Shown: positions 5,101 through 33,300 of the stretch, in pieces
Layout of the letters: each line of letters starts with the position of its first letter
How positions within the stretch are numbered: the stretch's first letter is position 1
Source of the DNA: Macrostomum hystrix
Lineage: Eukaryota; Animalia; Platyhelminthes
Reading direction: 5' to 3'
Assembly: GCA_950097015.1 (NCBI GenBank)
Contig: CATNEN010000005.1
Span: 3,534,001-3,598,000, forward strand
Length of the DNA stretch: 64,000 nucleotides
Position numbers and translations under genes: made by a program
Notes under the pieces: generated by a model
What the model was told of the DNA's origin: nothing
The model's input: the letters and a program-made list of their open reading frames with translations, nothing else
The model's database searches: none

Positions 5101-7250
5101 TTTACAATATTGTGATGGCGAAGCGCAGATCAGATAAATACTTCATGCTGTGAATGTTGCATTCGACTTGGTGGAGACCAAATCCTTGGACTAATAATTT
5201 ATAGGTGAAATGCAGCTAAAGCTGAAATCTCTAAAATTTTACTTTCTGTGGTCGCTTGAATGTTTTTGATTTATTTGTGGTTACTACTCGTATTGTTTAA
5301 ACGATTCGTTTAACGCTGTTGCAAAGGGCGATGCAATTCTATTGAGTAAATAAAGATAGACCAAAACTGTTTCTTTTTCACAGTCTGAGGGCCTTGCCTC
5401 ATCCGCACACCCCATGGATCGTTTACTCGAGTGTGTATAGATACACCATAGGTCATGGGAATGCCAGAAAATTTCTTGAACTTTGGTGGCATTGTTGATG
5501 CTGACACTTATAACCGACGAGTATCTCTTGTCATTCAATCAGGTGTTCGGTCAATTTTTGGCGTCAAGGGCAAATCTATATGACAATGTAAATATTCCTG
5601 AACACGTCTTTTAGATTCTCTTCATCTTTTGTATGAGAACTGTACTGATACATTGCTTAAAAATTTCTTCGACATTGAATATCGTCAGTAAAGTTTTTCT
5701 CTTTATCAATTAGTTTAGCACAAGTTGTCTTGCTAGTGATTTGAACTTTATTGCAGTTCCATTTTTCCTGCGCTGGCTTGCATTTTGATTAGATGTTTGA
5801 GTCAGCTTGCGGAAACCATTTAACTTGTATCAGTTATATGCCGCACGTTAGAAGGTTTTTAAAAAAGAGTTGCTAATTCTTCTTACCCACTCCGATTACC
5901 CTGCAACAAAGAAGTAGTGCTGATTCTTGGTTTAAACTTTTCGAGTCGTCAAGATGATCCTGTCGTCCCTTTTCGTTCTTCTCGCTGTATTTCCATCAGA
6001 TGCAACCGTATATCTGTGTTTCAAGAAATGCACCATTGTTATAACTTCATAAAGAAGGCAAGCAGCGAACGACGGAGACCATCGATGACGACGAACTTGA
6101 TGAAAATTATGAGCCTCCAAGGAAGTCACCGTGTGCCAGCAAAAATGTTCAGTCCGCCGGTGCTCTATCAGGCGGCCGTCCAAGTGATACCCAGCTGCTG
6201 AAAGAGATGCAGAAAGAAAAAGCTCGGCCTTCATTGGATCTCAATCACCGTTATCTGCTGGAACACCGCTAGCAAGGGATTCTGCGGTGCCTACGACCCA
6301 GTTAATTCTACTCGAGATGCACATGCAAACAAGAATTATGAGTCAGATGTCTCAAAAGCTAGACGATGTAATCGAAATATACACCAACTATTAGACACCA
6401 CGAGAAAACGAGAATCGCGAGGACCGGGTAATTTACGACTTCTCTGGTCAACATTTTCGTCTCTCAGAACTTTCGATAGTTCGGACAGTATTTGCTTGGC
6501 CACTAGTTCGTCACTAATTATTTAGTCACAAACAAAGATCAGCGGTTGTCTAATTGGACACTGCATTACTTCAAGTAGAATGGTAAATACATCTAAGATG
6601 ATAATTATAATCTAATTGCTGTTTACAAGATATTTAGTGTAATCCTCATGCTATTTATCTGTCATTGACATGCAATTAAATTGCTAGAAAATATCTTGCC
6701 CAAATTGCAACAAAGTTGTCATTTAGATTAGGCTTCTTGCACTTTAAACAACAACTCACTGGTAATTGGAGTGCAAGAATTGCGAAATTATCGCGTCTCC
6801 AATGACAACTTCTGGTAATTCTGCGCAGTTTTGTTCTTCGAGACGTTCTCGGCTTGTCTTACATATTTATAGGCTGTTCGTGCCTATTTAAATGGATATT
6901 CGAAGCCAAAGTCAAACATCTTCACACAAACCAGTCGTGACTTCCTGTATGCTGGCAAAGAAGACCTTAATTCAAGACACAACAGCTCTGAACTGTGCTC
7001 TGGTTTCAGCTAAACTCATTGCATGTAAGTGTGTGGCTGACAGCGACAGCTTTGACAGCTTTGTCATTCCAAAGAACAATGATTTAGTTAGACTAGTCAA
7101 GCAGTGATGATTCAATGTAGATTTTTAATGAAGGAATTAAAATAACTAGATAAACTTCTTTGCGTACATTTCAACGAGAATTCATTTCACTTGTTAGCGT
7201 TTTCTTTTAGAAAACAAGATCCTGCTTGGACGCGGAACAACAACTGAGGC

Positions 7251-10105
7251 ATGGCTGCAGCCCAGGAATGCATTTTGCTGGCCCTCCTAGCTGGACTGTG
7301 TGCGGCTGACAGCAGTCAATGTGAGTTGCAGTCCATGGACATTCTTGTCCGATTGAGCACCAGTCCGTAGGTTGTCTCCCCTAACATGATTCTAAACTTA
7401 TTTTCGTTTCAGGCACTCTCAACATCACCAAAGATTCCATCGCTGACTCGTGGCAGTCGTCCAGCTTTATTGATCACCATAAAGTTGCGCTGTGCTTTAA
7501 AAACCAGTCCACAGAGACACATTCCCAGCATTTCTACAGATTCTTCCACTCGAAAGTCAGTAAGAATGACTCAGATGCAGGCTATCACTGGTTTGTGATC
7601 AAACTGAAGAGGCCTGAGCTGATCAGCTCTGTGGGTATCAGGGCCAGGTCAGGTGAGCGATTCAGTTAATTTACAATCAAGAGCTACTGAATACCTGCTC
7701 CTAGCGACTCTCTTCAAGCTCTTGTTTGCAGCTCAAAAGTAGAAAATAATTGACATTGCAGAAGCAGATAAAGTTCCCATCGCTAAATTAAACCCCAGAG
7801 CAGCAGACATTGAGATCTGGACTTCTCAAACAGACGTGGATTTTGGACATGAGCACTGCGACTCAAAGAACATCAGCTCTACTTTCATTAGAGGAGAGAG
7901 CTCAGGTATCTGGAAGCTGTGCGGCAGGACGCCCTCAAATGTTTCTGCAGGACAAGAATTGAGCATTCCCTGCGTCAGGCAACAGGTGAGGCCATCAGGT
8001 GACTGATGGTTCATAATTCATGAGCAACCTTGCAGGTTTAATTAGGCGAGTATAATGCAAGCCAATATTCTGTATCAGCAATGCAGCTTAGGGTTTCTCT
8101 GGAGAAATATCCACATATATTTTATTTTAGTAGATTTGCAAACAAAATGACTAAAGATCGAGGCATAAACAGCAAGCAAAAACACAAATGTTGACTGTAA
8201 TTTAGCATGGAGAATGTGGGTCACATGCTTTAGGGACAAATTTCTGTAACCACAAAAAGAGACACATTTTATTCCGCTTCTATTTCACCTAATTTAACAG
8301 TGCTGACATAACCAGAAACTGTATGCGGTTTTCAGGTCCGAATGATTCTGCTGAGAAAATACGTCGCAAACGTTGCTGATGCAGAAAACCAGTGCATGAA
8401 CTTTATTGGTATGTGGATTCATAAATTTGAAATACAAGGTGAGTTTGCCAAACGGCTTTTGTTACTACAACAGTACATCCACCGATACTATATCTCTTAT
8501 CCACCTATATTAAATCCCTACGTATTCTAATGCTCGAAAATGAACATAATTGCTGCCAAGGCAGGATGCTTATAGAATAATCTTTTAAATAATTACTCCC
8601 CAAAAGCAACAGACCAATAATTTAAACTATTTCTTGTTCAATTCTGTCGAGCAAAGAAACTGTGCAAACTGATGTCATCGTCACGGTATGGAGAGAACGC
8701 CTTCTTCTTGTTGGATTTTCTGTTTTAAGTTACATTAGAAGTAGTAAGCTATAGTCTACCTCGCTAACCAAACCCCAGCTAGCACATAGGTAGCATTTTT
8801 GTGTTGAAATTGTGTTGAAATGTGTTGAAATTTGTGCTGAGAATTTTGTAAATCTTGGATAGCAGTTACTAAAAAAACTAAAAATAACAACAGCAAATCT
8901 ATTTTGCGAATCTCTCCGGATAAAAATATAGAAAACATTGAGTCAATCGTTTCTTAAAACGTTTAGCTACAATTGAGCCATCCGATGAAGTTGTGAGAAA
9001 CTCAAACGTCACAGTGAGCTGTCGGGTCCAGGTGTGCCACGAAGCACCTGTCGATCTGCCACCTGTTATTCTGACTCTCGCAAAGTCCAACGGAGATGAA
9101 AACACGATTAGCACCTTTCGCACTTCTGGCAACTCGAGTGCCAGCAGCGTGTCAGAATCCATTCAAAATGTGAACGAAAGTCACGCTGGTAACTACTCAT
9201 GCAGAGTGGATGACGAGGTCCTCAGCTCCCGACTGCTCAAAGTCTACTGTGAGTATACAATGAAGCCCGCAAAAGTGCCATTTCACAAGAGCACACAGCA
9301 ATGTCTGCAGTCTCACAAACTCAACAATACCTGTTCTCAGATCCGCCAAGCAACCTGAGCATCTACCGATCAAATGACACCTGTGCCACTGAGCCATCAT
9401 ATTGGAATTTCATCTTCGAGTCAACGCAGTCAGATCCACGTCCTCTGCACAAATGCTTTCTCAGAGACCACCAAGACAAAATAGCCACAGTAACAATGGC
9501 ATTGAGTGTCACGGAATTGGATGGCAAATTCAGGTCGATTTGGAAATGCGAAAACTGTCTGACTGTGAATGTGACTTGCACAGCACATTGGAATGATGAT
9601 AAACTGTCATGGACCTACAGCACCACAGCGAGTCATTCTTGTCCTTTGACAACGGACTCTACCATTCCGACTGAGGCAGCTGAAGTTGGCTCCAAGAGCA
9701 CGGATAAATATTCTCATGCTGAAACCATTACAATTGCAGAGAGGCAGTCAAGCACTTCCCCAGCAACACCAGTTACCGCAGAACCAGCTGTTAAGAGCTC
9801 TTTTAAACCGGTGCTGTTGGCGATCGCAGTTGGACTCGTTGTTATCGATACTTGGCTCGCAGTCATACTCAGCAAGGTAAATATAATGTTGAGGAATTGA
9901 AATATCAAAAGTGAAACAATCCGTCATTGCTCCAACTGTCTGTTCTATGCAGCGATTCGCCTCGAGATCTCGCGACAGGTCACAGGAGGCAGGGATGGCT
10001 TCGCCACTGGAACGGCTCAGAGAGACGACAACTAATTTGAGTCATGTTCGTGTAGCAGATGGGGCCTTTAACAATGGGAATAATGTGGGACTACCGATTG
10101 AGTAG
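7251..10105 (+). CDS. Receptor copy B: signal peptide - F-type-lectin-like - Ig - Ig-like - S/T/P stalk - TM containing Asp - Tyr-free tail
   Basis: Exons 7251-7320 (MAAAQECILLALLAGLCAADSSQ), 7413-7652, 7762-7985, 8336-8438, 8967-9248 (VTVSC..AGNYSC), 9341-9876 (YPP..TM VLLAIAVGLVVIDTWLAVILSK), 9953-10105. Total 1608 nt, phases consistent, no internal stops. Confidence 0.8.
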
Positions 10106-10744
10106 TGATCAGTTACATGAGCAATGATTACATTCTGTTGCTATGCTGTTCCACTAAAATGGCTCGCCACACTAGACCCACTTTGTGTCTGTAATCTGTC
10201 CTCCTGTATCAATTGAGTAGCGTGAGCCCTGAGCGGATTGTCTGGCGTCATTTTCACAGTAAACAGTAAATTTGTAATACTAGTACAGCCCAGTTTCAAT
10301 AGCGAATTTCACTTTCACTTTTAATTTTTCTATTTCAATTTAGTGAGTTTCAATAAATTGTGTTTTACCAGTGAGCCTGTGCATCGACTTTTCCCACTAA
10401 TTTAAGGACATTCTACGTGCAAAGATTAAGACAGAAATGCTGGGTAATGAAACAGCGCAAAAAGCGTCGGATTCTAGAAAGATCGGGCGTGACTTGTTTA
10501 CATGTTTCCAAGAACCTTCGTCACCCTTCTTTCTGGAACTTTCTTTGGCGCGTATGAATAAACGAGCCCTTCCCCTTATTGGCCAAGAGTGAACTTTCCG
10601 CGCGACTCACGCACTCGACTCACGTGGCTAAAATCTCCGTGTTCCGTGTTAATTCATTTTCACAGCAGAACAATAACCTCGAAATGCCACAATATTAGCG
10701 CTCTAATACAGTCGATTCAATCGGGTCTGGTAATGTTGATACAG

Positions 10745-11840
10745 TTATGGGAAGATGGGAATTGAGCCTGAGGATTTGGGAAGATCGGAATTGATCCTGT
10801 GTATACGGGAAGATGGGAAGTGGACTTAAGGATTTAGGAAGATGGAAATCAAACCTGAGGATATGGGAAGATGGAAATCAAACCTGAGGATATGGGAAGA
10901 TGGAAATCAAACCTGAGGATCTGGGAAGATGGAAATCAAACCTGAGGATCTGGGAAGATGGAAATCAAACCTGAGGATCTGGGAAGATGGAAATCAAACC
11001 TGAGGATCTGGGAAGATGGAAATCAAACATGAGGATTTGAGAAGATGGAAATCAAACATGAGGATATGGGAAGATGGAAATTAAACCTGAGGATATGGGA
11101 AGATGGGAATCAAACCTGAAGATCTGGGAAGATGGAAATCAAACATGAGGATCTGGCAAGATGGAAATTAAACCTGAGGATATGGGACGATGGGAATCAA
11201 ACCTGAGGATCTGGGACAATGGGAATCAAACCTGAGGATCTGGGAAGATGGAAATCAAACATGAGGATTTGAGAAGATGGAAATCAAACATGAGGATTTG
11301 AGAAGTTGGAAATCAAACATGAGGATTTGAGAAGATGGAAATCAAACCTGAGGATCTGGGAAGATGGAAATCAAACCTGAGGATCTGGGACGATGGGAAT
11401 CAAACCTGAAGATCTGGGAAGATGGAAATCAAACATGAGGATCTGGCAAGATGGAAATTAAACCTGAGGATATGGGACGATGGGAATCAAACCTGAGGAT
11501 CTGGGACGATGGGAATCAAACCTGAGGATCTGGGAAGATGGAAATCAAATATGAGGATTTGAGAAGATGGAAATCAAACATGAGGATTTGAGAAGTTGGA
11601 AATCAAACCTGAGGATTTGAGAAGATGGAAATCAAACATGAGGATTTGAGAAGTTGGAAATCAAATATGAGGATTTGAGAAGATGGAAATCAAACATGAG
11701 GATTTGAGAAGTTGGAAATCAAACCTGAGGATTTGAGAAGATGGAAATCAAACCTGAGGATCTGGGACGATGGAAATCAAACATGAGGATTTGAGAAGAT
11801 AGAAATTGAAACTGAGGATCTAGGAGGATGAGAATCGAAC
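10745..11840 (+). repeat. 29-bp minisatellite (GGGAAGATGGAAATCAAACCTGAGGATCT)n
   Basis: Direct inspection. Confidence 0.95.
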
Positions 11841-11859
11841 CTGGGCAGTGTCCTAGCTG

Positions 11860-12235
11860 AAGACCCAGTCAGCCTGTGATTTTCACACCTCAATGTCGGC
11901 TGCTCGAGCGGCCAAATCGTCTCGGAATTTTCTGCTGTCATCTGTACAAAAGGCTTTCACAATTTTCAAAATATTCACAATTAAGGCAGAATAAGTGCTC
12001 ACTTCTCGCCGTGATGGACACAGAGCTGATGCTCTCCTGCTGTCTCAGTTTGATCACAAGCCAGTGGAATCCGGCATCAGCGCTTTGGGTGCTGAATTAG
12101 TGAAGAAATTGCGAGGTGCCAACATGATTAGCTGAGCCACTCTAGAGGCAAGCACGATACGTTGAATGATACATATAGCTAGACGACTGCCACGATGCTT
12201 CGATGCTGCTCTTGCGTATGAAAATATTACCTGTT
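11860..12235 (-). pseudogene. Remnant of A-type lectin exons 2-3
   Basis: Minus strand reads C..IRKSSIEASWQSSSYMYHSTYRACL*SGSANHVGTSQFLH*..DAGFHWLVIKLRQQESISSVSITAR with in-frame TAG/TAA, plus a truncated ARAADIEV exon. Confidence 0.75.
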
Positions 12236-12379
12236 AGAAACAATTTGCTCTAAAGAGTATTGATTGAATTTTGAAACAAGTGCTTGCAGAGGCTAGCAGA
12301 AGATGCCCGCTTTTAAGAAATGTGAACATTTCGTAAACACAAATCGTTCTTTCAGACCGATGTCCATAAACTTCCTCCT

Positions 12380-12685
12380 AAGGAGGGAGAGTGCCAGAGC
12401 GGTCTAACCACGTTTGCCTCTCGCAACAAGGTCCCTGAGTTCGATTCCACTGAGGACGCAGCCTCAGGCGGAGTGTACAGTGCCTGACGATGAGAAAGTC
12501 AGGGCAGATGTGTGAGTGTCTGCCTTCATGAAGTATTTGTATGAGTGTTTGCTCAGGAGTGTGTGCTCAGGAGTGTGTGCTCAGGAGTTAGCGGAATGGT
12601 AGAACTGCCTCCTCAATGGCTGCGCGTCTACTGTCACCAATGGATGTGCCAGTGTCCACAGCCGTCCAAAAATAATTAGTATTGT
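12380..12685 (+). mobile_element. SINE family 1 copy
   Basis: Same head and core as other copies; a few internal GTGTGTGCTCAGGA units. Confidence 0.75.
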
Positions 12686-13839
12686 TGCTACCCTGCAGCT
12701 GCTAGGCTGAAACACGCAATTGTCCGAGGCAGCTCTACCCACAGTGGCGCACGTCAGTATATATTGTGACGGCGAAGCGCAGATCAGATAAATACTTCAT
12801 GCTGTGAATGTTGCATGCGACTTGGTCGAGACCAAACCATTTGACTAATAGTTTATAGTCAGAGTCAATACTTTAAAATATCTAGAATTTTATGAATTGA
12901 AAATATACTTTTGAACCTTTGAACCCCAGATTTTGTTATTCGTCTAAACAATTCGTTTTTTACCTATGCATTTTGCTAGCGATGCGATTTAATTGGGTAG
13001 ATATCGACCACAACTGCTTTGATCGCGTTATCAGGGCTTTGTCTTATCCACACACGCAATAGATTGTTTACTCATTGTTTACGCAAGCGTGTTTTGCGGG
13101 CTTAAAGCACTGAGACTTAACTCTCAAGTACAAACGATTAGAAGATTCTGCATGTTTATTCGAACTGAATCAGCTGCATGCGTAGAAACATTTTGCTCAT
13201 GTCGGAAAATATTTGGAGAGGAGACGCAGGGCACCCGAACTGCAACGAAGATGCATCATGCTAAACCTATGGCATGAGACAGGTAAGCCTATTGTAGGAG
13301 ATAGGTCCAGCAGCAGCATCCATTCACGGACTACTGTTCATTGTGATTGTAAAACCGATAAGTAGTCATTGCGGGCAGTTTGTCTCAGAGGGAGCACACA
13401 CACATTTAGTGCGATTGCAAAGTACTGAATAAGCATAAAGACTTGATACGAAGACTCAGCGCAGAGCTTTCAGGCACACTTGTTTAACAAAAGCCTTCTG
13501 TTTTACCGGCAGAAACTGTCGAAACATATAAACAGGACTCAGTCAAAAACAAAACATTTTCCGGTCTAAAAATAGTATTGGTTTCACGGCAAACGGTATG
13601 ATTAATTAGGAAGGCTAGTTCTGTCACCGCATTCATGAGTACATCATCCAACAGTGACTGAATTCGTGCTGAATATCATATTAATCAAATCTACATTTGA
13701 TAAAATGTTCCAAGAGTAGGCACAGTGAAAGCTGTCAGCACATGCAGTTCATTCCGTGTCGACAGCAAAACCAGTTTCCGAATCATCAGTTCCAGCATGA
13801 TCACCTCCAGCAATGCAGCGCATTCAACACGCATTGGAG

Positions 13840-16371
13840 CTAAGCTTCGATGTAGATGCTCGCTCGAGATGGTCCAGCTGCCGACATCTTGATGGCTTGC
13901 TGGCGCTCAACAATGGCCAGCTGCCTCTGAAACAGTTGAGCACTGATTTTTCGAAGCAACAATTCATAAAAAGTTTGTCAGGTAAAGCTGCTACCTTTGT
14001 TTTCACCAGATAACCGCAAACGCTCAAGAGTGCCGCGGTGAGAACAGCAATGAGCAACCAAGGAAGCCAGATCACTGAGCACACTTGCTTTGGCTGCATG
14101 TCGGATTTCGTTGCAGCTGAAATCACAGAGCAGCGAGCATCAAATTTCATTGTGACTGATTTTCTACAAAAGCTTAAACTCTTCTTACACTTCTGTTTCC
14201 AGTCGATGCTTGCGTGAGTTGAGAACAGCAGTCGAGACTGGCTCGCTTCATCAAACTGATGAGCTGAGCAGTTTGCAGTCAGCCTGTCAACATAGGAGCA
14301 CTTCTCACAGACCCACACAGAGGTCAGTGACTGTGAGCTGGTCATACTCGAGTTTCCAAGTCTTCGCAGAGTGAGCAGTCTGTGACTCGAGTCGGTAGCA
14401 ATGCACTCATGCTCAGGATTAGGCTCTGACACTGACGACTCAAAAGTTATTGCGAATCGAGCTCGAGACCCCACACTGAGACTGTGCACATCAACGGAGA
14501 TCGTCAGATGTCTCGGAGGATCTGCAATGTGCACTTTTATGAGTGAGTGTTGGATAGTTTGATGGGCTCATTGGTAAAAAGCCACTCACGGAGTACTCGC
14601 AGGGTCTGGCTGCTGAGCACCTCATCGCCTAGGCTGCAGATGTAGTTGCCTGCATCAGACAGCTGCACCTGCTCAATCAGGTGAGCTTGCAATCCGGTGG
14701 AGAGTGTCAGAGGGGAGTTTTCGCGAGTCAGTCTGACCATTTTGATCGTCTCATTGTTCTGGATGCAATCGACATGGCATCTGACGGTGACTTGTGAGTT
14801 TTGAATCGCCGAATTCTTTGATATATTCGCTATTGATGAAATTCGGAATTAGGTATGAAAAACATTGTAAACGGTGAGAAGGCCACATGGAGTATTTCAA
14901 ACTCCAACATTTTGTCTGAATCTCCTAAATTATTCAACCATTCGCCATGAAAGTCCATAACCCGGGCTAAAACTTTTAGCTCTATCCGATTAAACAACTT
15001 CCAGAATCACAATACGTCAGCATCGTCGAGATATTTAAGAATTCTCGCCGGGGTGTCTACTATTGTGAGGCTACTATTGTGAGGCTACTATTGTGAGGCT
15101 ACTATTGTGAGGCTACTATTGTGAGGCTACTATTGTGAGGCTACTATTGTGAGGCTACTATTGTGAGGTTACTATTGTGAGGCTACTATTGTGAGGCTAC
15201 TATTGTGAAGCTACTATTGTAAGGCTACTATTGTGAGGCTACTATTGTGAGGCTACTGTTGTTGACTATTTTGCATTGATTGATATTGTTATTTTTTTAC
15301 TTTTGAACCGCTGGAGTTCGCCAAGAGGTTTATACAGAACAATGTCAGTCACTAGTCCATGTCACCTAGGACTTCGACACGCATCGCTGAATATCTCGAC
15401 TATGCTAGCTCGGACGGCTCTAAAAGTTAGTTCATCGTAAAAGATGGAAAACTTCATTCATACGTGATAACTTACTGAATGCAGCAAATCTTCTGAGCCA
15501 CATGTCGACGAAAGCCATCGCTCGTCTAATGGGCTCTGGTTCTGTCGCGACAAATCTCCTTAATAAAACAATGCGGACCTGAAAAGGGTCTCACAATCCG
15601 TACTGATGTGGAACGGACACGAATTTTTACCTTAATTTTTGCATCTGCAATTACCATATGTGTATTGCAGTTTACAGTCAAAGTTTGTCCGGATGAAACT
15701 TTGTTTGGCGTCCTTCCGCACAGCCTCCAGGTTCCGCTTTTCGCCCCCTGAAAGACGGAGCTGATGTTTCTCGAGTCGCAGTGGTCCGAGCCGAAGTCCA
15801 GGTCTTCCGGCGACGTCCACACCTCAATGTCTGCTGCTCGAGCGGTCAAATTGTATCCGTAGGTATCCGAGCGGTCATATTGACTCAAAGCTTTTAAGTT
15901 GAGAAAAAATATCTGTATTAAAAAAGCAACTTGGGCGTTTTATATGGCAGGATAAAATCACAGGGAAGAGAAGTGCTCACTTCTCCCTCTGATGGACACA
16001 GAGCTGATGCTCTCCTGCTGTCTCAGTTTTATCACAAACCAGTGGAATCCGGCATCAGCGCTTTGCAGACCTTCCTTGGAGTGAAGAAATGGCCAGTTGC
16101 CAACTTCATCAGCTGAGCGACTCCAGAAGCAATTGCTCGGTGGTGGATCCAAGCTGGATGACTGCCATGATGCTTCAATGGTGCTCTTTCTGATTGGAAG
16201 CATACCTGTTTGAAGCAATTGGGTTAACAAACAATGGAAAGCATTATAGATACATAAATCCAGTATTGGAAAACCTGACCGTGCCAGCTCACATCTGTCT
16301 GAGTCCCCTCGACTCAGAATGGCGAATCCAAGAAAAGCCAGGGTGACACGCAACACAGCCAGATGGTTCAT
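13840..16371 (-). CDS. Receptor copy A2: lectin exons nearly identical to A; different Ig, TM and short tail ending SIYIEA
   Basis: Exons 16371-16293, 16205-15981, 15890-15655, 15578-15476, 14829-14590 (VTVRC..AGNYIC), 14521-14189, 14116-13995 (TM IWLPWLLIAVLTAALLSVCGYLV), 13926-13840. Total 1425 nt, phase-consistent. Confidence 0.75.
15057..15262 (+). repeat. 14-bp tandem repeat (CTACTATTGTGAGG)n in an A2 intron
   Basis: Direct inspection. Confidence 0.95.
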
Positions 16372-16832: not shown

Positions 16833-18130
16833 GGAGGGACAACAGCAATATTCAACTCTGGTGCAATTCGACGTATCGTGCTTGCTTCTGGCGTGGCTCA
16901 GGTAATCATGTTGGCACCTCTCGGTGTGCCATGAAGAAAGTTTTATTCTGACTCTCGCAAAGCCCAACGGAAACAAGAACGCAAGCACCATTCGCACTTT
17001 TGGCATCTGGAGTGCCAGCAGCGTGTCAGAATCCATTCAAAATGTGAACTAAAGTCACGCTGGTAACTACTCATGCAGAGTGGGTGACGAGGTCCTCAGC
17101 TCCCGACTGCTCAAAGTCTACTGTGAGTATACAATGAAGCCCACATAAGTGCCATTTCACAAGAGCACACAGCAATGTCTGCAGTCTCACAAACTCAACA
17201 ATCCCCGATCTCAGATCCGCCAAGCAACCTGAGCATCTACTCAAATGACAACTGCGCCACTAAGCCGTCGGAACGGAATTTCACCTTCGAGTCAACGCAG
17301 TCAGATCCACATCCTCTGCATAAATGCTTTCTGAGAGACCACCGAGACGAAAATGCCACAGTAACAATGGCATCGAGTGTCACAGAATCGGACGGCAAAT
17401 TCAGGTCGATTTGGAAATGCGAAAACTGTCTGACTGTGAATGTGACATGCACAGCACATTGGAATGATGATAAACTGTCATGGAGCTACAGCACCACAGA
17501 AAGTCTGTCTTGCCCTATGAACTCAGTCTCTTTCAGTGAGTTGGAGATTATGTCTGCCGTACTTGTCACAGTTTCTATAGTACATAATGATCTAGGCGGA
17601 CTCTGAACTTTGAAATGTTACTGATTCACTTTGTCCCCTCCCAGTTGGGCTTGACTGGAGTCTTGACTTCTTTCAGTGAGTTGGAGATTATGTCTGCAGT
17701 ACTTGTCACAGTTTCTATAGTACATAATGATCTAGGCGGACTCTGAACTTTGAAATGTTACTGATTCACTTTGTCCCCTCCCAGTTGGGCTTGACTGGAG
17801 TCTTGACTTCACATAAAACATGATTTCAGGTGCCCTTCGATGTGCTTATCAGATGCAAGCCTCCATTTGGATTCTGTTGGCAGTCATTTCGGTCCTGACA
17901 TTGCTCCTGATTGTAGTCAGCATCTGTCTGTGGAGAACTCGGGTAATGCACTCCAGGATGCTAGCTGTGCTCACAATTCATGCTCCATTCAGTCTGACAG
18001 CAACTGGTTCGTGTAAATAAAAAACATTCACATTTCAGAGCCGAATAAAAGTGTTGCTCGAAGATCAACAAAATCCAGCAGCACATAGAGGGGCTGCGAA
18101 ATCTCGACAAAGTGTTTACATGACTGAGTG
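16833..18130 (+). pseudogene. Receptor pseudogene D (5' deleted; Ig1-Ig2-TM-tail)
   Basis: A lectin exon-2 fragment (STYRACFWRGSGNHVGTS) is fused to mid-Ig1. In-frame TAA at 17050-17052 where B has GAA. Ig2 exon from ~17214. TM IWILLAVISVLTLLLIVVSICLW. Tail ends SVYMTE*. Confidence 0.65.
17528..17810 (+). repeat. Tandem duplication of ~141 bp that includes a splice donor in pseudogene D
   Basis: Two near-identical units beginning TCTTTCAGTGAGTTGGAG. Confidence 0.85.
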
Positions 18131-21500: not shown

Positions 21501-23275
21501 CCCCGCGTGAATGGAGTGTCCTTTGATCGACCTCCCCGTTGCGACCTGCCCCAATTGCTGTGCTGGGTCTCATTGCGTGGTTTGCACCTACTCATGAAAC
21601 GATGTCCGCCTGTCTCTAAACCAAATTTTCAGGGATGCTGCTGCTAAGACCAATAAGAAGTGAATTCGCGTGCATTTCACAATACTTATACAAGAAACTG
21701 TTAACAGGGTAGAACTGTATTAGGAAGGTAATACCATGTCTTCTCCGAAAAAGTAATGTTTCTGCGGATTTTACACAGAAAATCTTTAAACATTAAAAAA
21801 TATGATTGCGTTTAAAATAAGAATGGCAGAATTTAAAACTGCGGCAGAGAAAAATTGAGTGAAATTGAAAGCATAATAAAACGATGAGCAGTCAGCAGGA
21901 AAAGTAAGTAATTCAAGAAAAATTACCATAAAAATTATGCCTAGAAAATTCCTTTTGCATTAATAAATCAATTTAGGCTTTAAGTGCGATAGATTATTGC
22001 AGCTTAATAGTGGCTTAAAAGCATTTGTGTCAATTTTTTCATTTCTTTTTGGTATAATTTCACAGCACGACCTAAATTTACATTCGTTAATTTGTTTTCA
22101 AATATACGTAAAGTAGTTTTTTCTTTGTTTTGTATTTGTTTTATGAATAAGTGGAACGCTATTAAAGTGTAGACAAACGTCAACGAACGATTGAAATGTA
22201 GTTCTAAATTTAATAAATCAATTATCCATGTTGTTAACGAATCGTTGATGTATACATATGAACTGTTATTTTTTAGAAATAAAAACTAAAATAAAAATAG
22301 ACAAATTTTTGCATCCGGCTTAAGAGCTGCAAGAGTTTTAATTGCGCTCCTGTTTTGTGACCTTTGATTTGATTTAAAAAAACACGAGTCTGTTGCGAGT
22401 TCGTCACTAGTTATTTGGTCCTCACTGACGCTGTTTCGTTGTAGAGGCTCTCATTTTCAAGCATGTTGCCTCGTCTTTAGAAAAGACTTTTTAGCTCGTT
22501 CTTGACGTTTCTTTATTGATGAATTTATATACTGGCAGATAAAACAATGATCAGCGGTTGGCAAATTGGTCACTGCACTACTTCAAGTAGGATGGTAATT
22601 GCATGCATCAAACATGATAATTATAATCAAATTCCTGTTTACAAGATATTTAGTGTAATCCTCATGCTATTTATCTGTCATTGACATGCAATTAAATTTC
22701 TAGAAAAATTTTTAAAGATCTTGCTGAAATTGCAACAAAGGTGTCATTTAGATTAGGCTTCTTGCACTTTAAACAACAACTCACTCGTAATTGGAGTGCA
22801 AGAATTGCGAAATTATTGCGTCTCCAATGACAACTTCTGGTAATTCTGCGCAGTTTTGTTCTTCGAGACGCTCTCGGCTTGTCTTACATATTTATAGGCT
22901 GTTCGTGCCTATTTAAATGGATAGTCGAAGCCAAAGTCAAACATCTTCACACAAACCAGTCGTGACTTCCTGTATGCTGGCAAAGCGGACCTTAATTCAA
23001 GACACAACAGCTCTGAAATGTGCTCTGGTTTCAGCTAAACTCATTGCATGTAAGTGTGTGGCTGACAGCGACAGCTTTGACAGCTTTGTCATTCCAAAGA
23101 ACAATTATTTGGTCAGACTAGTCAAGCAGTGATGATTCAATGTAGATTTTTAATGAAGGAATTAAAATAACTAGATAAACTTCTTTGCGTACATTTCAAC
23201 GAGAATTCATTTCACTTGTTAGCGTTTTCTTTTATAAAACAAGATCCTGCTTGGACGCGGAACAACAACTGAGGC

Positions 23276-25866
23276 ATGGCTGCAGCCCAGGAATGCATTT
23301 TGCTGGCCCTCCTAGCTGGACTGTGTGCGGCTGACAGCAGTCAATGTGAGTTGCAGTCCATGGACATTCTTGTCCGATTGAGCACCAGTCCGTCGGTTGT
23401 CTCCCCTAACATGATTCTAAACTTATTTTCGTTTCAGGCACTCTCAACATCACCAAAGATTCCATCGCTGACTCGTGGCAGTCGTCAAGCCATTTCGATA
23501 ACAATCGGATACCACTGTGCTTTAAAAACCAGTCCACAGAGACACATTCCGTATATTTCTACAGATTCTTCCACTCCAAAGCCAGTAAGAATGACTCAGA
23601 TGCAGGCTATCACTGGTTTGTGATCAAACTGAAGAGGCCTGAGCTGATCAGCTCTGTGGGCATCAGGGCCAGGTCAGGTGAGCGATTCAGTTAATTTACA
23701 ATCAAAAGCTACTGAATACCTGCTCCTAACGATTCTCTTCAAGCTCTTGTTTGCAGCTCACAAGTAGAAACTAATTGACATTGCAGAAGCAGATGAAGTT
23801 CCCATCGCTGAAATAAACCCCAGAGCAGCAGACATTGAGATCTGGACTTCTCAAACAGACGTCGATTTTGGACATGAGCACTGCGACTCAAAGAACATCA
23901 GCTCTACTTTCATTAGAGGAGAGAGCTCAGGTATCTGGAAGCTGTGCGGCAGGACGCCATCAAATGTTTCTGCGGGACAAGAATTGAGCGTGCCCTGCGT
24001 CAGGCAACAGGTGAGGCGATCAGGTGACTGATGGTTCATAATTCATGAGCAATATAATATTTTAGGTTGAAGCCTAGTCGTTTAATTTATTCCGCTTCTA
24101 TTTCACCCAATTTAAACAGTGATGACATAACCAGAAACTGTATGCGGTTTTCAGGTCCGAATGATTCTGCTGAGAAAATACGTAGAAAACGTTTCTGATG
24201 CAGAAAACCAGTGCATGAACTTTATTGGTATGTGGATTCAAAAATTTGAAATGCAAGGTGAGTTTGCCAAACGGCTTTTGTTACTACAACAGTACATTCA
24301 CCAATACTATATCTCTTATCCACCTATATTAAATCTCTATGTATTCTAATGCTCGAATAAGAACATAATTGCTGTCAAGGCAGCAGGATGCTTTTATAAC
24401 AATCTTTCAATTAAGATTCCCCAAAAGCAACAGACCGATAATTTCAACTATTTCTTGTTCAACGCTGTCGAGCAAAGAAACTGTGCAAACTGTGCTATTG
24501 TCACTGTATGGAGAGAACGCCTTCTTCTTGTTGGATTTTGAGTCCTACGAGTTACAATTTAAAGTAGTCTACCTTGCTAACCAACTCCAACTAGCACATA
24601 GGTAGCATTTTTGTGTTGAAATTCCTAAATGTTGGATAGCAGTTTATACTGTCAATAACTAAAAATAGCAAAAGCAAATCTATTTTGTGCATCTCAACTG
24701 AAAAATGTAACAAATCTTGAGTCATTCGTTCCTTAAAAATATTAGTTACGATTGAGCCATCCGATGAAGTTGTGAGAAACTCAAACGTCACAGTGAGCTG
24801 TTTGGCCGCAGTGTGCCATGACGAAAATTTTTTTCTGACTCTCGCAAAGCCCAACGGAAACAAGAACGCAAGCACCTTTCGTACTTCTGGCAACTCGAGT
24901 GCCAGCAGCGTGTCAGAATCCATTCAAAATGTGAACGAAAGTCACGCTGGCAACTACTCATGCAGAGTGGATGACGAGGTCCTCAGCTCCCGACTGCTCA
25001 AAGTCTACTGTGAGTATACAATGAAGCCCACATAAGTGCCATTTCACAAGAGCACACAGCAATGTCTGCCGTCTCACAAACTCAACAATCCCTGTTCTCA
25101 GATCCGCCAAGCAACCTGAGCATCTACCGATCAAATGACACCTGTGCCACTGAGCCATCATATTGGAATTTCATCTTCGAGTCAACGCAGTCAGATCCAC
25201 GTCCTCTGCACAAATGCTTTCTGAGAGACCACCGAGACGAAAATGCCACAGTAACAATGGCATCGAGTGTCAAGAAATTGGACGGCAAATTCAGGTCGAT
25301 TTGGAAATGCGAAAACTGTCTGACTGTGAATGTGACTTGCACAGCACATTGGAATGATGATAAACTCTCATGGAGCTACAGCACCACAGGGAGTCATTCT
25401 TGTCCTTTGACAACGGACTCTACCATTCCGACTGAGGCACCTCAAGTTGGCTCCAAGAGCACGGATAAATATTCTCATGCTGAAACCATTACAATTGCAG
25501 AGAGGCAGTCAAGCACTTCCCCAGCTACACCAGTTAGCGCAGAACCAGCTGCTAAGAGCTCTTTTAAACCGGTGCTGTTGGCGATTGCAGTAGGACTCGT
25601 TGTTATCGATACTTGGCTCGCAGTCATACTCAGCAAGGTAAATATAATGTTGAGGAATTGAAATATCAAAAGTGAAACAATCCGTCATTGCTCCAACTGT
25701 CTGTTCTATGCAGCGATTCGCCTCGAGATCTCGCGACAGGTCACAGGAGGCAGGGATGGCTTCGCCACTGGAACGGCTCAGAGAGACGACAACTAATTTG
25801 AGTCAAGTTCGTGTAGCAGATGGGGCCTTTAACAATGGGAATAATGTGGGACTACCGATTGAGTAG
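23276..25866 (+). CDS. Receptor copy B2 (recent paralog of B; TM Asp, Tyr-free tail)
   Basis: Exons 23276-23345, 23438-23677, 23787-24010, 24155-24257, 24746-25009, 25102-25637, 25714-25866. Total 1590 nt, open. Same exon structure as B. Confidence 0.8.
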
Positions 25867-26499
25867 TGAGTTACATGAGCAATGATTACCTTCTGTTGCT
25901 ATGCTGTTCCACTAAAATGGCTCGCCACAATAGACCCACTTTGTGTCTGTAATCTGTCCTCCTGTATCAATTGAGTAGCGTGAGCCCTGAGCGGATTGTC
26001 TGGCGTCATTTTCACAGTAAACAGTAAATTTGTAAGAATAGTGCAGCCCAGTTTCAATAGCGAATTTCACTTTCACTTTTAATTTTTCTATTTCAATTTA
26101 GTGAGTTTCAATAAATTGTGTTTTACCAGTGAGCCTGTGCATCGACTTTTCCCACTAATTTAAGGACATTCTACGTGCAAAGATTAAGACAGAAATGCCG
26201 GGTAATGAAACAGCGCAAAAAGCGTCGGATTCTAGAAAGATCGGGCGTGACTTGTTTACATGTTTCCAAGAACCTTCGTCACCCTTCTTTCTGGAACTTT
26301 CTTTGGCGCGTATGAATAAACGAGCCTTCCCCTTATTGGCCAAGAGTGAACTTTCAGTGCGACTCACGCACTCGGCCTTGTGGCTAAAATCTCCGTGTTC
26401 CGTGATATTCATTTTCACAGCAGAACAATAACCTCGAAATGCCACAATATTAGCGCTCTATACAGTCGATTCAATCGGGTCTGGTAATGTTGATACAGT

Positions 26500-27420
26500 T
26501 ATGGGAAGATGGGAATTGAGCCTGAGGATTTGGGAAGATCGGAATTGATCCTGTGTATACGGGAAGATGGGAAGTGGACTTAAGGATCTAGGAAGATGGA
26601 AATCAAACCTGAGGATATGGGAAGATGGAAATCAAACCTGAGGATATGGGAAGATGGAAATCAAACCTGAGGATCTGGGAATATGGAAATCAAACCTGAG
26701 GATCTGGGAAGATGGAAATCAAACCTGAGGATCTGGGAAGATGGAAATCAAACCTGAGGATCTGAGACGATGAAAATCAAACCTGAGGATCTGGGAAGAT
26801 GGAAATCAAACCTGAGGATCTGGGAAGATGGAAATCAAACCTGAGGATCTGAGACGATGAAAATCAAACCTGAGGACCTGGGAAGATGGAAATCAAACCT
26901 GAGGATCTGGGACGATGGGAATCAAACCTGAGGATCTGGGACGATGGAAATCAAACCTGAGGATCTGGGACGATGGAAATCAAACCTGAGGATCTGGGAC
27001 GATGGAAATCAAACCTGAGGATCTGGGACGATGGAAATCAAACCTGAGGATCTGGGACGATGGAAATCAAACCTGAGGATCTGGGACGATGGGAATCAAA
27101 CCTGAAGATCTGGGAAGATGGAAATCAAACATGAGGATCTGGCAAGATGGAAATTAAACCTGAGGATATGGGACGATGGGAATCAAACCTGAGGATCTGG
27201 GACGATGGGAATCAAACCTGAGGATCTGGGAAGATGGAAATCAAACATGAGGATTTGAGAAGATGGAAATCAAACATGAGGATTTGAGAAGTTGGAAATC
27301 AAACATGAGGATTTGAGAAGATGGAAATCAAACCTGAGGATCTGGGACGATGGAAATCAAACATGAGGATTTGAGAAGATAGAAATTGAAACTGAGGATC
27401 TAGGTAAATGAGAATCGAAC
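26500..27420 (+). repeat. 29-bp minisatellite, duplicate copy
   Basis: Same unit as 10745-11840; shorter array. Confidence 0.95.
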
Positions 27421-27439
27421 CTGGGCAGTGTCCTAGCTG

Positions 27440-27835
27440 AAGACCCAGTCAGCCTGTGATTTCCACACCTCAATGTCGGCTGCTCGAGCGGCCAAATCGT
27501 CTCCGAATTTTCTGCTGTCATCTGTACAAAAGGCTTTCACAATTTTCAAAATATTCACAATTAAGGCAGAATAAGTGCTCACTTCTCGCCGTGATGGACA
27601 CAGAGCTGATGCTCTCCTGCTGTCTCAGTTTGATCACAAGCCAGTGGAATCCGGCATCAGCGCTTTGGGTGCCTTGAATTAGTGAAGAAATTGCGAGGTG
27701 CCAACATGATTAGCTGAGCCACTCTAGAGGCAAGCACGATACGTTGAATGATACATATAGCTGGACGACTGCCACGATGCTTCGATGCTGCTCTTGCGTA
27801 TGAAAATATTACCTGTTAGAAACAATTTGCTCTAA
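27440..27835 (-). pseudogene. Duplicate of the 11860-12235 lectin remnant
   Basis: Near-identical to 11860-12235; lies within the segmental duplication. Confidence 0.75.
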
Positions 27836-27960
27836 AGAGTATTGATTGAATTTTGAAACAAGTGCTTGCAGAAGCTAGCAGAAGATGCCCGCTTTTAAGA
27901 CATGTGAACATTGCGTAAACACGATTCGTTCTTTCAGACCGATGATAATGAGCTTCCTCC

Positions 27961-28365
27961 TAAGGAGGGAGAGTGCCAGAGCGGTCTAACCACGTTTGCC
28001 TCTCGCAACAAGGTCCCTGAGTTCGATTCCACTGAGGACGCAGCCTCAGGCGGAGTGTACAGTGCCTGACGATGAGAAAGTCAGATCAGATGTGAGTGTG
28101 TGCTCAGGAGTGTGTGCTCAGGAGTGTGTGCTCAGGAGTGTGTGCTCAGGAGTGTGTGCTCAGGAGTGTGTGCTCAGGAGTGTGTGCTCAGGAGTGTGTG
28201 CTCAGGAGTGTGTGCTCAGGAGTGTTTGCTCAGGAGTGTGTGCTCAGGAGTGTGTGCTCAGGAGTTAGCGGAATGGTAGAACTGCCTCCTCAATGGCTGC
28301 GCGTCTACTGTCACCAATGCATGTGCCAGTGCCCACAGCCGTCCAAAAATAATTAGTATTGTTGC
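27961..28365 (+). mobile_element. SINE family 1 copy with expanded internal 14-mer
   Basis: Duplicate of the 12380 copy. GTGTGTGCTCAGGA is expanded over ~28095-28265. Confidence 0.75.
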
Positions 28366-30267
28366 TACCCTGCAGCGGCTAGGCTGAAACACGCAATTGT
28401 CCGAGGCAGCTCTACCCACAGTGGCGCACGTCAGTATATATTGTGACGGCGAAGCGCAGATCAGATAAATACTTCATGCTGTGAATGTTGCATGCGACTT
28501 GGTCGAGACCAAACCATTTGACTAATAGTTTATAGTCATAGTCAATAGTTTAAAATATCTAGAATTTTATGAATTGAAAATATACTTTTGAACCTTTGAA
28601 CCCCAGATTTTGTTTACGGTTATTCGTCTAAACAATTCGTTTTTTACCTATGCATTTTGCTAGCGATGCGATTTAATTGGGTAGATATCGACCACGACTG
28701 CTTTGATCGCGTTATCAGGGCTTTGTCTTATCCACACACGCAATAGATTGTTTACTCATTGTTTACGCAAGCGTGTTTTGCGGGCTTAAAGCACTGAGAC
28801 TTAACTCTCAAGTACAAACGATTAGAAGATTCTGCATGTTTATTCGAACTGAATCAGCTGCATGCGTAGAAACATTTTGGACAGGAGACGCAGGGCACCC
28901 GAACTGCAACGAATATGCATCATGCTAAACCTATGGCATGAGACAGGTAAGCCTATTGTAGGAGATAGGTCCAGCAGCAGCATCCATTCACGGACTACTG
29001 TTCATTGTGATTGTAAAACCGATAAGTAGTCATTGCGGGCAGTTTGTCTCAGAGGGAGCACAAACCAAATTTAGTGCGATTGCAAAGTACTGAATAAGCA
29101 TAAAGACTTGATACGAAGACTCAGCGCAGAGCTTTCAGGCACACTTGTTTAACAAAAGCCTTCTGTTTTACCGGCAGAAACTGTCGAAACATATAAACAG
29201 GACTCAGTCAAAAACAAAACATTTTCCGGTCTAAAAATAGTATTGGTTTCACGGCAAACGGTATGATTAATTAGGAAGGCTAGTTCTGTCACCGCATTCA
29301 TGAGTACATCATCCAACAGTGACTGAATTCGTGCTGAATATCATATTAATCAAATCTGCCATGGATAAAATGTTCCAAGAGTAGGCACAGTGAAAGCTGT
29401 CAGCACATGCAGTTCATTCCGTGTCGATAGCAAAATCAGTTTCCGAATCATCAGTTCCAGCATGATCACCTCCAGCAATGCAGCGCATTCAACACGCATT
29501 GGAGCTAAGCTTCGATGTAGATGCTCGCTCGAGATGGTCGAGCTGCCGACATCTTGATGGCTTGCTGGCGCTCAACAATGGCCAGCTGCCTCTGAAACAG
29601 TTGAGCACTGATTTATCAAAGCCAGATTTCATAAAAAGTTTGTCAGGTAAAGCTGCTACCTTTGTTTTCACCAGATAACCGCAAACGCTCAAGAGTGCCG
29701 CGGTGAGAACAGCAATGAGCAACCAAGGAAGCCAGATCACTGAGCACACTTGCCTTGGCTGCATGTCGGATTTCGTTGCAGCTGAAATCACAGAGCAGCG
29801 AGCATCAAATTTCATTGCGACTGATTTTCTACAAAAGCTTAAACTCTTCTTACACTTCTGTTTCCAGTCGATGCTTATTTTGTATGGATTGATATTGTTA
29901 TTGATGTCATCTCCGTAGGACTTTGCGAGAGTCAGAATTGGCAGATTGACAGGTGCTTCATGGCACACCAAAAGTTTCCTCAATACCGCGACAGTCGCAA
30001 CACTTTTCCAAGTTACTTTGATATACTCGGTATCGAATGAAAAATAGTGTGGAATAATACTCACCTGGTGCTTTATTGAAAAATATTTATTTATAGATTT
30101 GACTCTATATGCCAATTAGCTTAACACATGTTTGCCTTTTACTTAGCAAAATTTTAATGGCAAATCGTTGAGGAAACTCACCTTCTATCACAAGTTTTCG
30201 AATCCACATGCCAATAAAGTTCATGCACTGGTTTCGTACATCAGTAACGTTTGCGACGTATTTTCTC

Positions 30268-30370
30268 GGGTGGGGGAGCCTTCGCGACCCCGAGCGCGCC
30301 TGGCGCGCTTCCCAATGCTGCCGCCTTCACGTGGCGGGACCGTTCGGACTCACCCCCGGCGAAGTGCAGC
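30268..30370 (+). ncRNA. Candidate HDV-like self-cleaving ribozyme at the LINE 5' end
   Basis: P3/L3 GCC-TTCACGT-GGC, J1.1/4 GT, P4 TCGG..CCGG, J4/2 CGAA, P2 GCTGC/GCAGC. The P1 5' strand is not clearly resolved. Confidence 0.5.
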
Positions 30371-33300
30371 GCTCACCCTGGACATCGTCTGGGGACAGGA
30401 CACCTCGGACACTGGCGACGTGGAGACCAACCCTGGGCCACCAACGTCGTACTCATGCGGTGGCTGCAGCACTAACGTCCACAGCTTTCGCATTTTACAA
30501 CTTAACGCGTCGCCTGTGTTCAGGAGACGAATTCGACGGCGTCCGGGTCCCTCCCAAGACTGCCGGGCTGGCAAATTGCCGCCCGCAGGGACCGTCGAGC
30601 CAATCGCGCTGGCGAGCCGGCAGAGACGCCGCACGGCGGAGTCTGCTTCCTGATCAAAGAAGGTATCGACTTCTCCGAGCTCCAGATGCCACCCCCCAAG
30701 GCTGTCAACTCGGCCACGGAAGCCTCCGCGGTCACTATTCACGACCCGCGTATCAGCCGCCCACTCTCGATCATTAACCTCTACATCCCACCGGTCCGTG
30801 CAGGAGACGGACGGGTCAGCGACTTCGAACCAGACTGGCTCCCATCCGGCCCCGACACCGTTATCCTCGGCGACATTAACGCACACCACGGGATGTGGGA
30901 CGAGAGCTGCGAGACCGACGACGCCCTGGGGACCGAGTTCGAAAACTGGGCCACGACGTTCGACTACGTCGCGCTTAACGATGGCTCCTTCACCAGATTC
31001 AGCCCCAGAGGCCTGACCAGCGCCCCGGACGTGACCTTCGTCCCGGCCAACTGGCAAGACCGGATGACCTGGAAGACGGAGGCACACATCGGATCCGACC
31101 ATCTCCCTATTGTTATCGAGATTCGAAACAGCTCCAAGAGGCCCCCAAAGCGGAAACGGGTGACCCGCTTCGCCTACCATAAGGCAGACTGGACCCTATT
31201 CCGCGAGCTCATTTCCGAAGAACTCAAGCACTGGCAACACCGCCCACCACGCTCGGTCGCTGGTGCAACCGATAAACTGAACCACGCCATCCGTTCAGCG
31301 CTCGAGGAGCGATTCCGCAGGGCTAGCGCCGAGCCCCAGTAGCATGGTGGTGCCCTGAGGCCGAAGCCGCGTGCACCGCCAGACGTCAGGCCCTCGAAGC
31401 TCTCCGCACGGATCCTGACGACGAGCTCGCCGCGGCGTATCAAGCCGCGGGTGCTTTCGCCACCGCGTCCATCCGTAGGGCCAAGGAGGCACTCTGGCAA
31501 GAATTCATATCCGACAACCACAATAAACTGGACTCGGCCGCGATCTGGAGAATAATCCGAGTTCTCGACGGGCGGACACCGGCGGCCAGACCATCCGCAG
31601 CCATCAAGGACTCGGCCAACCGCTGCGCCACCACGAACTCACAAAAGGCCAACCTTTTCTGTAGAGAGTACGCAACGGTCGCGCAACTTCCTAAAGTCAA
31701 AGTGCGGGACCACAAAGTCAAACTTGAGGCCAGGAGAGCCCTTGATAAGCCCTGTGCGTGCAACGGACAACGCCTGGGAATGTGTGCTGACTTCGACCTA
31801 GAGGCGCTCACCCGAGCCCTCCGCGCCATCCCGAGCCGGTCCGCCCCAGGGCTAGACGGGAAATCCAACTTGATGCTGAAGAATCTGCCGCCAAAGGGGA
31901 TCGAGCTCCTCCTCTTCACCATCAACCTTTCTTGGCGTAGCGGCCAGTGTTGCGCTGCCTGGAAAATCGGCGACATCAGGCCGATACACCAGCCGGGGAA
32001 AAGCCCGGATGCGACCTCCAGCTACGGCCCCATCTGCCTCCTTTCCTGCACGGCGAAAGTCGCGGAACGTCTGGTTAACGAACGCCTCACGCAATACCTG
32101 GAGTCCGAGAACCTCATCCACCCGGCCCAGGCCGGCTTCCGCCGCGGTCGCTCTACTGAAGAGCAGATTGCCGCGGCATCCCAGTACGTCTTCGACGGCT
32201 TCCAGAAGAAAAAACCAGCAAACCGTACAGCGATGCTGTTTGGGGACTTCTCGCATGCCTACGAGCGCATGTGGCGACAGGCCCTCATCGCTAAGTTAAG
32301 CCGTAAGAAAGTCCCGACCTGCACGCGCCGCTGGATTCACTCGTATATTTCCGATCGACGTGCCATTGTGACCTGGGACGGCAACCAGAGCCCCCAACGC
32401 CTCTTCCCTGAGGGCCTCCCCCAAGGCTCCGTCATCGCCCCGACTCTGTGGACGGTGTTCGTCGATGACCTGTTGGAGGATGCCTCAGAGGACATCTTCT
32501 CTCTGGCGTACGCCGACGATATACGACCTTTGGCGCACAAGGCATGAATTTGAAGACCTATGAAGCAAGACTGCAAAGCGCGGCGAACTGGCTCGTCGAG
32601 TGGTGCACGACTGGGAAAGTTGACCTGAACAAATCCAAAACGGTCGTCACCTACTTCTCCCTCGACCCACGTGAGACAAACGGCAAGGCGAGACCGAATA
32701 TCAGACTCGGAGACATGCCAGCCCCATTCGAGGAACACCCCAAGATGCTGGGCGTGTACCTCGATTCACAGCTCACGTTCCGCCACCATGCGGCGGTCCA
32801 AAAGCGCAACCTGCAGAAGCGGACAGGCGCCCTGAGGTGCCTTGCTGGTCGAGACTGGGGCGCGACCCGAGATCTCTCAGACAGCTCTACCGCACCTACG
32901 CGGAAGCGGCGGTCCTACACGGCGCCTCCTCTTGGATGAGCTTTGCGTCCGACGCCTGAGTCCGGCGAAGTTGAGACCCAGCACCTCGCCGCAGCGCGCG
33001 TTATCTCGGGGTGCTGCCGATCCACCCCGACTGCCGCGCTCCTCAAAGAGGCCGGGCTGGCTCCACTCAACACCTCGGCGACTGCCGCTGCGGCTACGCT
33101 GGAGAAAACCCGGCGAGCAAGACAACAGACACCGCTCAGAACGCTGGCCGAACTCGACGTTCAACCGAGAATCCGCGCTCACGGCAACCACGGCGATTTC
33201 AGACGCAACTGGAGGACGGAGGCCAACGGATTGATCGCCCACGCGGGCCTCGCGGGATCCAAGCGCGAACCTGACAACGTGCCACCGCCTCCCCTATCGC

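Follow-up and report, generated by a model that had tools for sequence, protein, structure and literature searches.

A predicted intramembrane aspartate in a duplicated lectin-headed immunoglobulin receptor of Macrostomum hystrix

Gene B occupies positions 7251-10105 (+ strand) of a 64,000-nucleotide stretch of the Macrostomum hystrix genome (assembly GCA_950097015.1, contig CATNEN010000005.1, positions 3,534,001 to 3,598,000 of the forward strand; hereafter the window). B and its nearby duplicate B2 are predicted to encode type I membrane receptors, each composed of a signal peptide, a lectin-like head, an immunoglobulin (Ig) domain, a second beta-sandwich domain, a mucin-like stalk, one transmembrane (TM) segment and a 50-residue tail. 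The TM segment contains an aspartate followed by a threonine, and the tail has no tyrosine. Provided that the segment at 9811-9873 is the membrane anchor, the Asp cannot lie outside the bilayer. We tentatively propose that Asp13-Thr14 of this segment is a polar contact site within the membrane, where the receptor would associate with another membrane protein in a heteromeric complex. With one residue in two young duplicates as its basis, the acidic TM segment is a lead, not a result.

Gene B and its transmembrane aspartate

Gene B is an intact gene of six exons, which when joined give an open frame of 497 codons in a frame check of the splice model. Its features, all on the + strand, are as follows.

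7251-7320 (+): exon 1, start codon and signal peptide MAAAQECILLALLAGLCAADSSQ; donor AAT/GTGAGT
7413-7652 (+): exon 2, first half of the lectin-like head, with the motif SWQSSS followed by a hypervariable loop; 46-47% identity with the corresponding exon of the neighbouring genes A and A2
7762-7985 (+): exon 3, second half of the lectin-like head; 55-63% identity with A and A2
8978-9248 (+): exon 4, Ig domain with the motif GNYSCRV (Pfam Ig_2, 1.7e-6; ig, 2.3e-5)
9341-9663 (+): exon 5, first part, second beta-sandwich (Ig-like) domain common to the family, from the alignment of in-window paralogues and AlphaFold2
9664-9810 (+): exon 5, middle part, stalk rich in Ser, Thr and Pro, predicted to be disordered
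9811-9876 (+): exon 5, end, predicted transmembrane segment VLLAIAVGLVVIDTWLAVILS plus Lys; donor AAG/GTAAAT
9847-9849 (+): Asp codon GAT, TM Asp13, residue 438 of the 497-residue model; the next residue is Thr14
9877-9952 (+): intron 5, 76 nucleotides, GT..AG, identical in B2
9953-10105 (+): exon 6, 50-residue tyrosine-free tail (coding 9953-10102) beginning RFASRSRDR, and stop codon TAG (10103-10105)
10352-10357 (+): AATAAA, probable polyadenylation signal 247 nucleotides past the stop codon; the B2 counterpart is at 26110

All splice donors of the model are GTGAG or GTAAA, and the acceptors end in CAG except that of exon 4, where AATTGAG/C is the weakest splice site. The Ig domain was the sole Pfam match on the exons of B. 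When the lectin-head exons 2 and 3 were searched as separate half domains against Pfam and the sequences of the Protein Data Bank (PDB), no match was found, and PDB sequence and profile searches with exons 2, 3 and 5 returned matches at chance level only. By eye, we take the motifs SWQSSS, FHSK, HWFVIKL, GIRARS and AADIEIW in the head to resemble the F-type lectin consensus. The AlphaFold2 model of exon 5, for which exon 5 and an alignment of four in-window paralogues were the input, has seven strands in the beta-sandwich domain, with predicted local distance difference test (pLDDT) values of 53-79.

The translation of 9811-9876, read directly from the sequence, is VLLAIAVGLVVIDTWLAVILSK, in which the Asp is residue 13. 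The hydrophobic run comprises 21 residues, bounded by KP on one side and KRFASRSRDR on the other, and is the sole stretch of B long enough to span a membrane (9811-9873); its mean Kyte-Doolittle hydropathy is 2.5. Because only 12 residues above and 8 residues below remain on the two sides of Asp13, the Asp must be in the span, and no possible span avoids it. On the Wimley-White octanol scale, the best 19-residue window scores about -7 kcal/mol with a charged Asp and about -10 kcal/mol with a neutral Asp, and the Asp is present in every 19-residue window scoring below -2. AlphaFold2 places residues 157-176 of the exon 5 product in one continuous helix, with the Asp at 169. Thus, the initial annotation, which had located an Asp within the TM segment at GAT 9847-9849, agrees with the direct reading, the hydropathy, the Wimley-White windows and the AlphaFold2 helix alike. 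The topology also fits the positive-inside rule: the signal peptide would place the N-terminus outside the cell, and the flank after the TM segment is basic.

If the segment is read as a helix, Asp13 would fall on a heptad-spaced face formed by Ala6, Val10, Asp13, Ala17 and Leu20 and lined by small residues. A second face carries a small-xxx-small motif made of Ala4 and Gly8.

Exon 5 ends with AAG/GTAAAT at 9876/9877, and the acceptor of exon 6 is TATGCAG/CGA at 9952/9953; both sites are canonical. Reading through intron 5 would terminate the protein after seven codons (VNIMLRN*). In the TM coding stretch there is no further GT in a GTRAG context besides the real donor. Since the stretch has no other donor of the GTRAG type and the sites are canonical, splicing should keep the Asp. 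The count of tyrosines in the 50-residue tail is zero in B and B2 alike, as the initial annotation had stated, and between B and a 29-bp satellite downstream no credible tyrosine motif was seen in any open frame. Splicing that removes the Asp or appends an exon with a tyrosine motif, which the same annotation had named as a danger to its reading, is therefore not predicted for this gene.

At the start of the tail (9953-9982, +), the sequence RFASRSRDRS holds two overlapping RxR motifs of the endoplasmic reticulum (ER) retention type and an RxRxxS consensus for basophilic kinases; B2 has exactly the same residues here. RxR motifs of the RSRDR kind hold back unassembled subunits of channels and receptors.

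The duplicate B2 and the receptor family in the window

B2 lies within a segmental duplication of about 7.5 kb, in which 6530-14211 has been copied at 22542-29876. The members of the receptor family other than B are listed here.

23276-25866 (+): B2, intact six-exon duplicate of 491 residues with splice sites as in B; TM segment at 25572-25637, tail at 25714-25866
about 3870 to 596 (-): A, with the uncharged TM segment LMFVLLAVGLMFANVFVISAV at 1622-1684, which has an Asn at mid depth
596-721 (-): last exon of A, with the tyrosine motifs CIYFSM and TVYTEI
about 16400 to 13800 (-): A2, with the TM segment VIWLPWLLIAVLTAALLSVCG
16915-17927 (+): C, B-like Ig and second-domain exons (71-83% identity) with an in-frame stop near 17050 and without head exons; a separate, uncharged TM exon
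29501-35152 (-): chimeric copy, with a B-like exon 3 (89% identity) and a B-like Ig fragment fused in one open reading frame to an A2-like stalk and TM segment

The TM peptide of B2 is identical to that of B, with the Asp encoded by the same GAT codon at 25608-25610. The divergence between the two genes is a mosaic: exons 2 and 4 differ by 8.7% and exons 3 and 5 by 3.5-3.6%; intron 5 (76 positions) is unchanged, exon 6 differs at 1 of 153 positions (1 of the 150 that encode the tail) and the 3' flank at 6 of 392. Silent-site divergence near the TM segment is about 1.5%. This mosaic, from 0 to 10% across the duplication, suggests gene conversion, and the region of the TM segment and tail would be either a very recent duplication or homogenised by gene conversion.

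Among the 22 TM codons, two differences between B and B2 are synonymous and none is non-synonymous (neutral probability about 0.07). For the head exons, with the hypervariable loop left out, the ratio of non-synonymous to synonymous differences (pN/pS) is 0.36-0.39. From this ratio, B and B2 have been under purifying selection since the duplication; both genes are intact and do not appear to drift freely.

The loop itself, which follows SWQSSS (7466-7489 in B and 23491-23514 in B2), reads FIDHHKVA in B and HFDNNRIP in B2, so that seven of its eight residues are changed between identical flanks. Exon 2 as a whole diverges more (8.7%) than its flanking introns (1-5%). Also duplicated are the 29-bp satellite (10746-11843 and 26500-27423) and the 3' portion of A2. 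On the minus strand, both duplicates have a decayed remnant of a lectin exon that is interrupted by stops, at 12001-12219 and 27581-27801.

The exon plan of B is the same as that of A and A2, and alignments show that the head, Ig and second-domain exons are homologous. A tblastn search of the window with exons 2 and 3 of B found 46-63% identity to A and A2 (E values of 1e-13 to 1e-25). With homologous head exons, and with one or more Ig domains followed by a single TM segment, B and B2 appear from their sequences to belong to a Macrostomum family of lectin-headed Ig receptors, of which our literature search found no description.

Within this family, a tail with tyrosine motifs is a common feature, and its absence sets B and B2 apart. 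Only B and B2 were seen in the window with a tyrosine-free tail, whereas A bears TVYTEI. Likewise, a charged TM segment is found only in B and B2 among the receptor-family TM segments of the window, those of A, A2, C and the chimeric copy being uncharged. On the sequence, this contrast between a charged TM segment with a tyrosine-free tail and an uncharged one with tyrosine motifs is the pattern of paired receptors. Copy C was considered as an inhibitory twin of B and rejected, as it has an in-frame stop and its head exons are absent; C is probably a pseudogene or a fragment.

A polar contact site and its alternatives

In vertebrates, KIR2DS, NKG2C, SIRPβ, TREM and the activating Siglecs, which are coupled to DAP12, FcRγ or CD3ζ, likewise combine a charged TM segment with a short, motif-free tail. 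As in the clusters of vertebrate paired receptors, the cluster of B also has paralogues with uncharged TM segments, whose tails resemble the immunoreceptor tyrosine-based inhibition or switch motif (ITIM or ITSM). The families are not homologous, however, and the TM charge is Lys or Arg in the vertebrate activating receptors but acidic in B. The basic TM residue that marks the vertebrate adaptor-coupled activating receptors is absent from the TM segment of B. The rule of a basic receptor and an acidic adaptor, to which the initial annotation had referred, corresponds to the KDD/RDD motif of the T-cell receptor-CD3 complex, DAP12 and FcαRI.

A closer parallel is offered by Fc receptors (FcR) that depart from this rule. 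According to a 2026 review, CD16A and FcεRIα lack a basic TM residue and bind the adaptor dimers ζζ or γγ through FxxDT, located in the lower half of the TM segment; CD64 likewise lacks a basic residue there and carries the variant FxxNT (PMC13107469). In these receptors, a Y(small)xxxT motif of the adaptor supplies the Thr and Tyr to which the Asp and Thr are hydrogen-bonded, with no salt bridge, and the α chain in cryo-electron microscopy structures of FcεRI (PDB 8YWA) uses the same mode of assembly (PMC13107469). Polar TM residues tie such assembly to quality control in the ER and to the retention of unassembled subunits (PMC13107469). B resembles CD16A and FcεRIα in being a type I protein of the Ig superfamily with no basic TM residue and with a short tail that lacks signalling tyrosines. 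Its Asp13-Thr14, counted in a segment of 21 residues, is also in the cytoplasmic half of the membrane, eight residues from the cytoplasmic end. In contrast, B has no sequence homology to these receptors, its ectodomain has a lectin-like head, and no ζ-like or γ-like adaptor is known in flatworms. By analogy, B may work like the FcR-type receptors but without membership of their family. The initial annotation had taken the reversed polarity of the Asp to point to a partner with a basic TM segment. It is correct that the segment is acidic and has no basic residue, but in view of the precedent of CD16A, CD64 and FcεRIα that deduction was too narrow.

B also has something in common with the adaptors themselves, since its TM Asp with a nearby Thr recalls the DxxxT of DAP12, CD3 and FcRγ. 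However, the Thr of B is at +1 and an Ala is at +4, the ectodomain comprises 425 residues (signal peptide included), and the tail is without an immunoreceptor tyrosine-based activation motif (ITAM).

We propose that Asp13-Thr14, slightly below mid-helix in the TM segment and on its heptad face of small residues, would contact a second membrane protein. The lack of tyrosine in the tail of B makes a separate subunit, with a signalling or chaperoning role, the most likely kind of partner. Following the FcR precedent of hydrogen bonds from Tyr and Thr, its TM segment need not be basic. The overlapping RxR motifs of RSRDR just past the membrane would suit a subunit that is kept in the ER until it is assembled; they are consistent with the proposal but are not evidence for it. 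We infer the expression and splicing of B according to the gene model, a function for the Asp and the existence of a partner.

In favour of the assembly site we count that the Asp is in the TM segment by every measure, that neither gene is disrupted and the canonical splice sites are conserved, that pN/pS of the head is low and the TM segment has only synonymous changes, and that in the window a charged TM segment and a tyrosine-free tail are seen only in B and B2. Syk-family kinases are the usual readers of ITAMs. Such a kinase is present in flatworms, SmTK4 of Schistosoma (PMC2820527), and this also counts in favour.

Several observations weigh against the assembly site. The confidence of the AlphaFold2 helix is low (pLDDT 51-58), as is that of the whole exon 5 model (mean 56). 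Compared with FxxDT, the TM segment of B reads V-V-I-D-T, with a Val in place of the Phe. Because there is hardly any difference between B and B2 around the TM segment, intron 5 included, the shared Asp says almost nothing on selection; the two copies have it by descent, which is no sign of selection. With 46-63% identity to the heads of A and A2, the head of B is far from the near-identity seen in true pairs; because their heads are only about 50% identical, B and A would form no tight activating and inhibitory pair. A word search with exon 5 of B among proteins of 98-311 residues found no relative, and neither did a search of 1.84 billion representative proteins of any length for a B-type relative. 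Two matches in the latter search, to Sushi-repeat and CUB-like repeat proteins, were set aside as chance or low-complexity matches. In the window, a six-frame scan for ITAM-like motifs gave only AT-rich junk reading frames, none of them credible, and a scan of all six frames for hydrophobic segments yielded no small protein whose TM segment has a basic residue.

Almost as likely as the assembly site is that the Asp has no specific role. It would then be a recent, tolerated or mildly harmful single-base change in the ancestor of the young pair, and B and B2 would be tail-poor decoys, adhesion molecules or ligand sinks, or would be decaying like several of their neighbours. The codon GAT is one step from GTT, GCT or GGT, and the silent divergence of about 1.5% and the identical intron 5 leave no sign of selection keeping the Asp. 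Decayed copies abound in the cluster, among them C with its in-frame stop, the lectin fragments with stops and the chimeric copy split by a retrotransposon; moreover, neither relatives in the protein searches nor a partner in the window were found. On the other hand, six open exons and all splice sites have been kept in both copies, pN/pS of the head exons is about 0.4, both changes in the TM segment are synonymous, and the Asp stands next to a Thr on a face of small residues. A carboxylate in the middle of the membrane is costly and so rarely neutral, which also counts against the absence of a role.

Rather unlikely, though conceivable from the sequence, is that the Asp drives association within the family, either as a homodimer held by hydrogen bonds between protonated Asp residues or by an Asp-Asn bond in pairing with the Asn of an A-like paralogue that has tyrosine motifs, in which case B would borrow or modulate the tail of the paralogue. 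Asp, Asn, Glu and Gln drive the oligomerisation of model TM helices. The small-xxx-small motif of Ala4 and Gly8 on the second face of the helix would suit such contacts, and the Asn of A lies some 15 residues into its TM segment (1622-1684, -), comparable in depth to the Asp of B, so that pairing is conceivable. However, the argument is purely from sequence, the Asn of A may be incidental, and the TM segments of A2 and C have no polar residue. It is improbable that the 3' gene model of B is wrong or that the genes are silent, with other exons, a secreted form that skips the TM segment, or no transcript: exon 5 was unmatched in all protein collections searched, but the donor AAG/GTAAAT and the acceptor TATGCAG/C are good and identical in B2, no other GTRAG donor exists, AATAAA follows the stop codon in both copies, and only the 29-bp satellite lies downstream.

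Returning to the assembly site, the adaptor-coupled class to which the initial annotation had putatively assigned B and B2 is a reasonable hypothesis, compatible with the sequence and mildly favoured by the family context. The Asp in the only span, the tyrosine-free tail and the uncharged neighbours speak for it. The conservation of the Asp in B2, on which the annotation had also drawn, is real in that the GAT codon is the same, but in a near-identical recent copy it is uninformative, and the window contains no adaptor.

A wider reading, which we regard as unlikely, is that this free-living flatworm possesses a modular system resembling that of vertebrate natural killer cell receptors and Fc receptors, in which the tyrosine-free B and B2 with their acidic TM segments, as members of a fast-diversifying lectin-Ig family, would assemble with a separate signalling subunit, next to paralogues with ITSM-like tails of the inhibitory type. 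If true, paired immunoreceptors coupled to adaptors would have been invented independently in a protostome. Signalling via a partner through polar intramembrane contacts is held to be a hallmark of vertebrate immune receptors. A protostome case, from a family in which near-identical copies come to differ in their head loops, would offer a tractable model for the origin of modular systems and for lectin-Ig function. RNA interference and transgenesis are established in Macrostomum.

Other features of the window

A search of the window against Rfam gave no match. The chimeric copy is split by a decayed non-LTR (long terminal repeat) retrotransposon, a long interspersed nuclear element on the + strand at about 30.2-34.4 kb with a GC content of 58-62%, in which the domains Exo_endo_phos_2 (2e-17), RVT_1 (6e-28) and RNase_H (3e-6) were recognised. 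Adjoining the receptor cluster is a housekeeping gene, represented by an exon for the C-terminal part of the RNA polymerase III subunit Rpc34 at 35880-36359 (-; Pfam 4e-25). Further along, a tandem array of about 180 units of a 16-bp repeat, extremely asymmetric between the strands, extends from 47625 to about 50600, with a GC skew of -0.8 over 48-50 kb.

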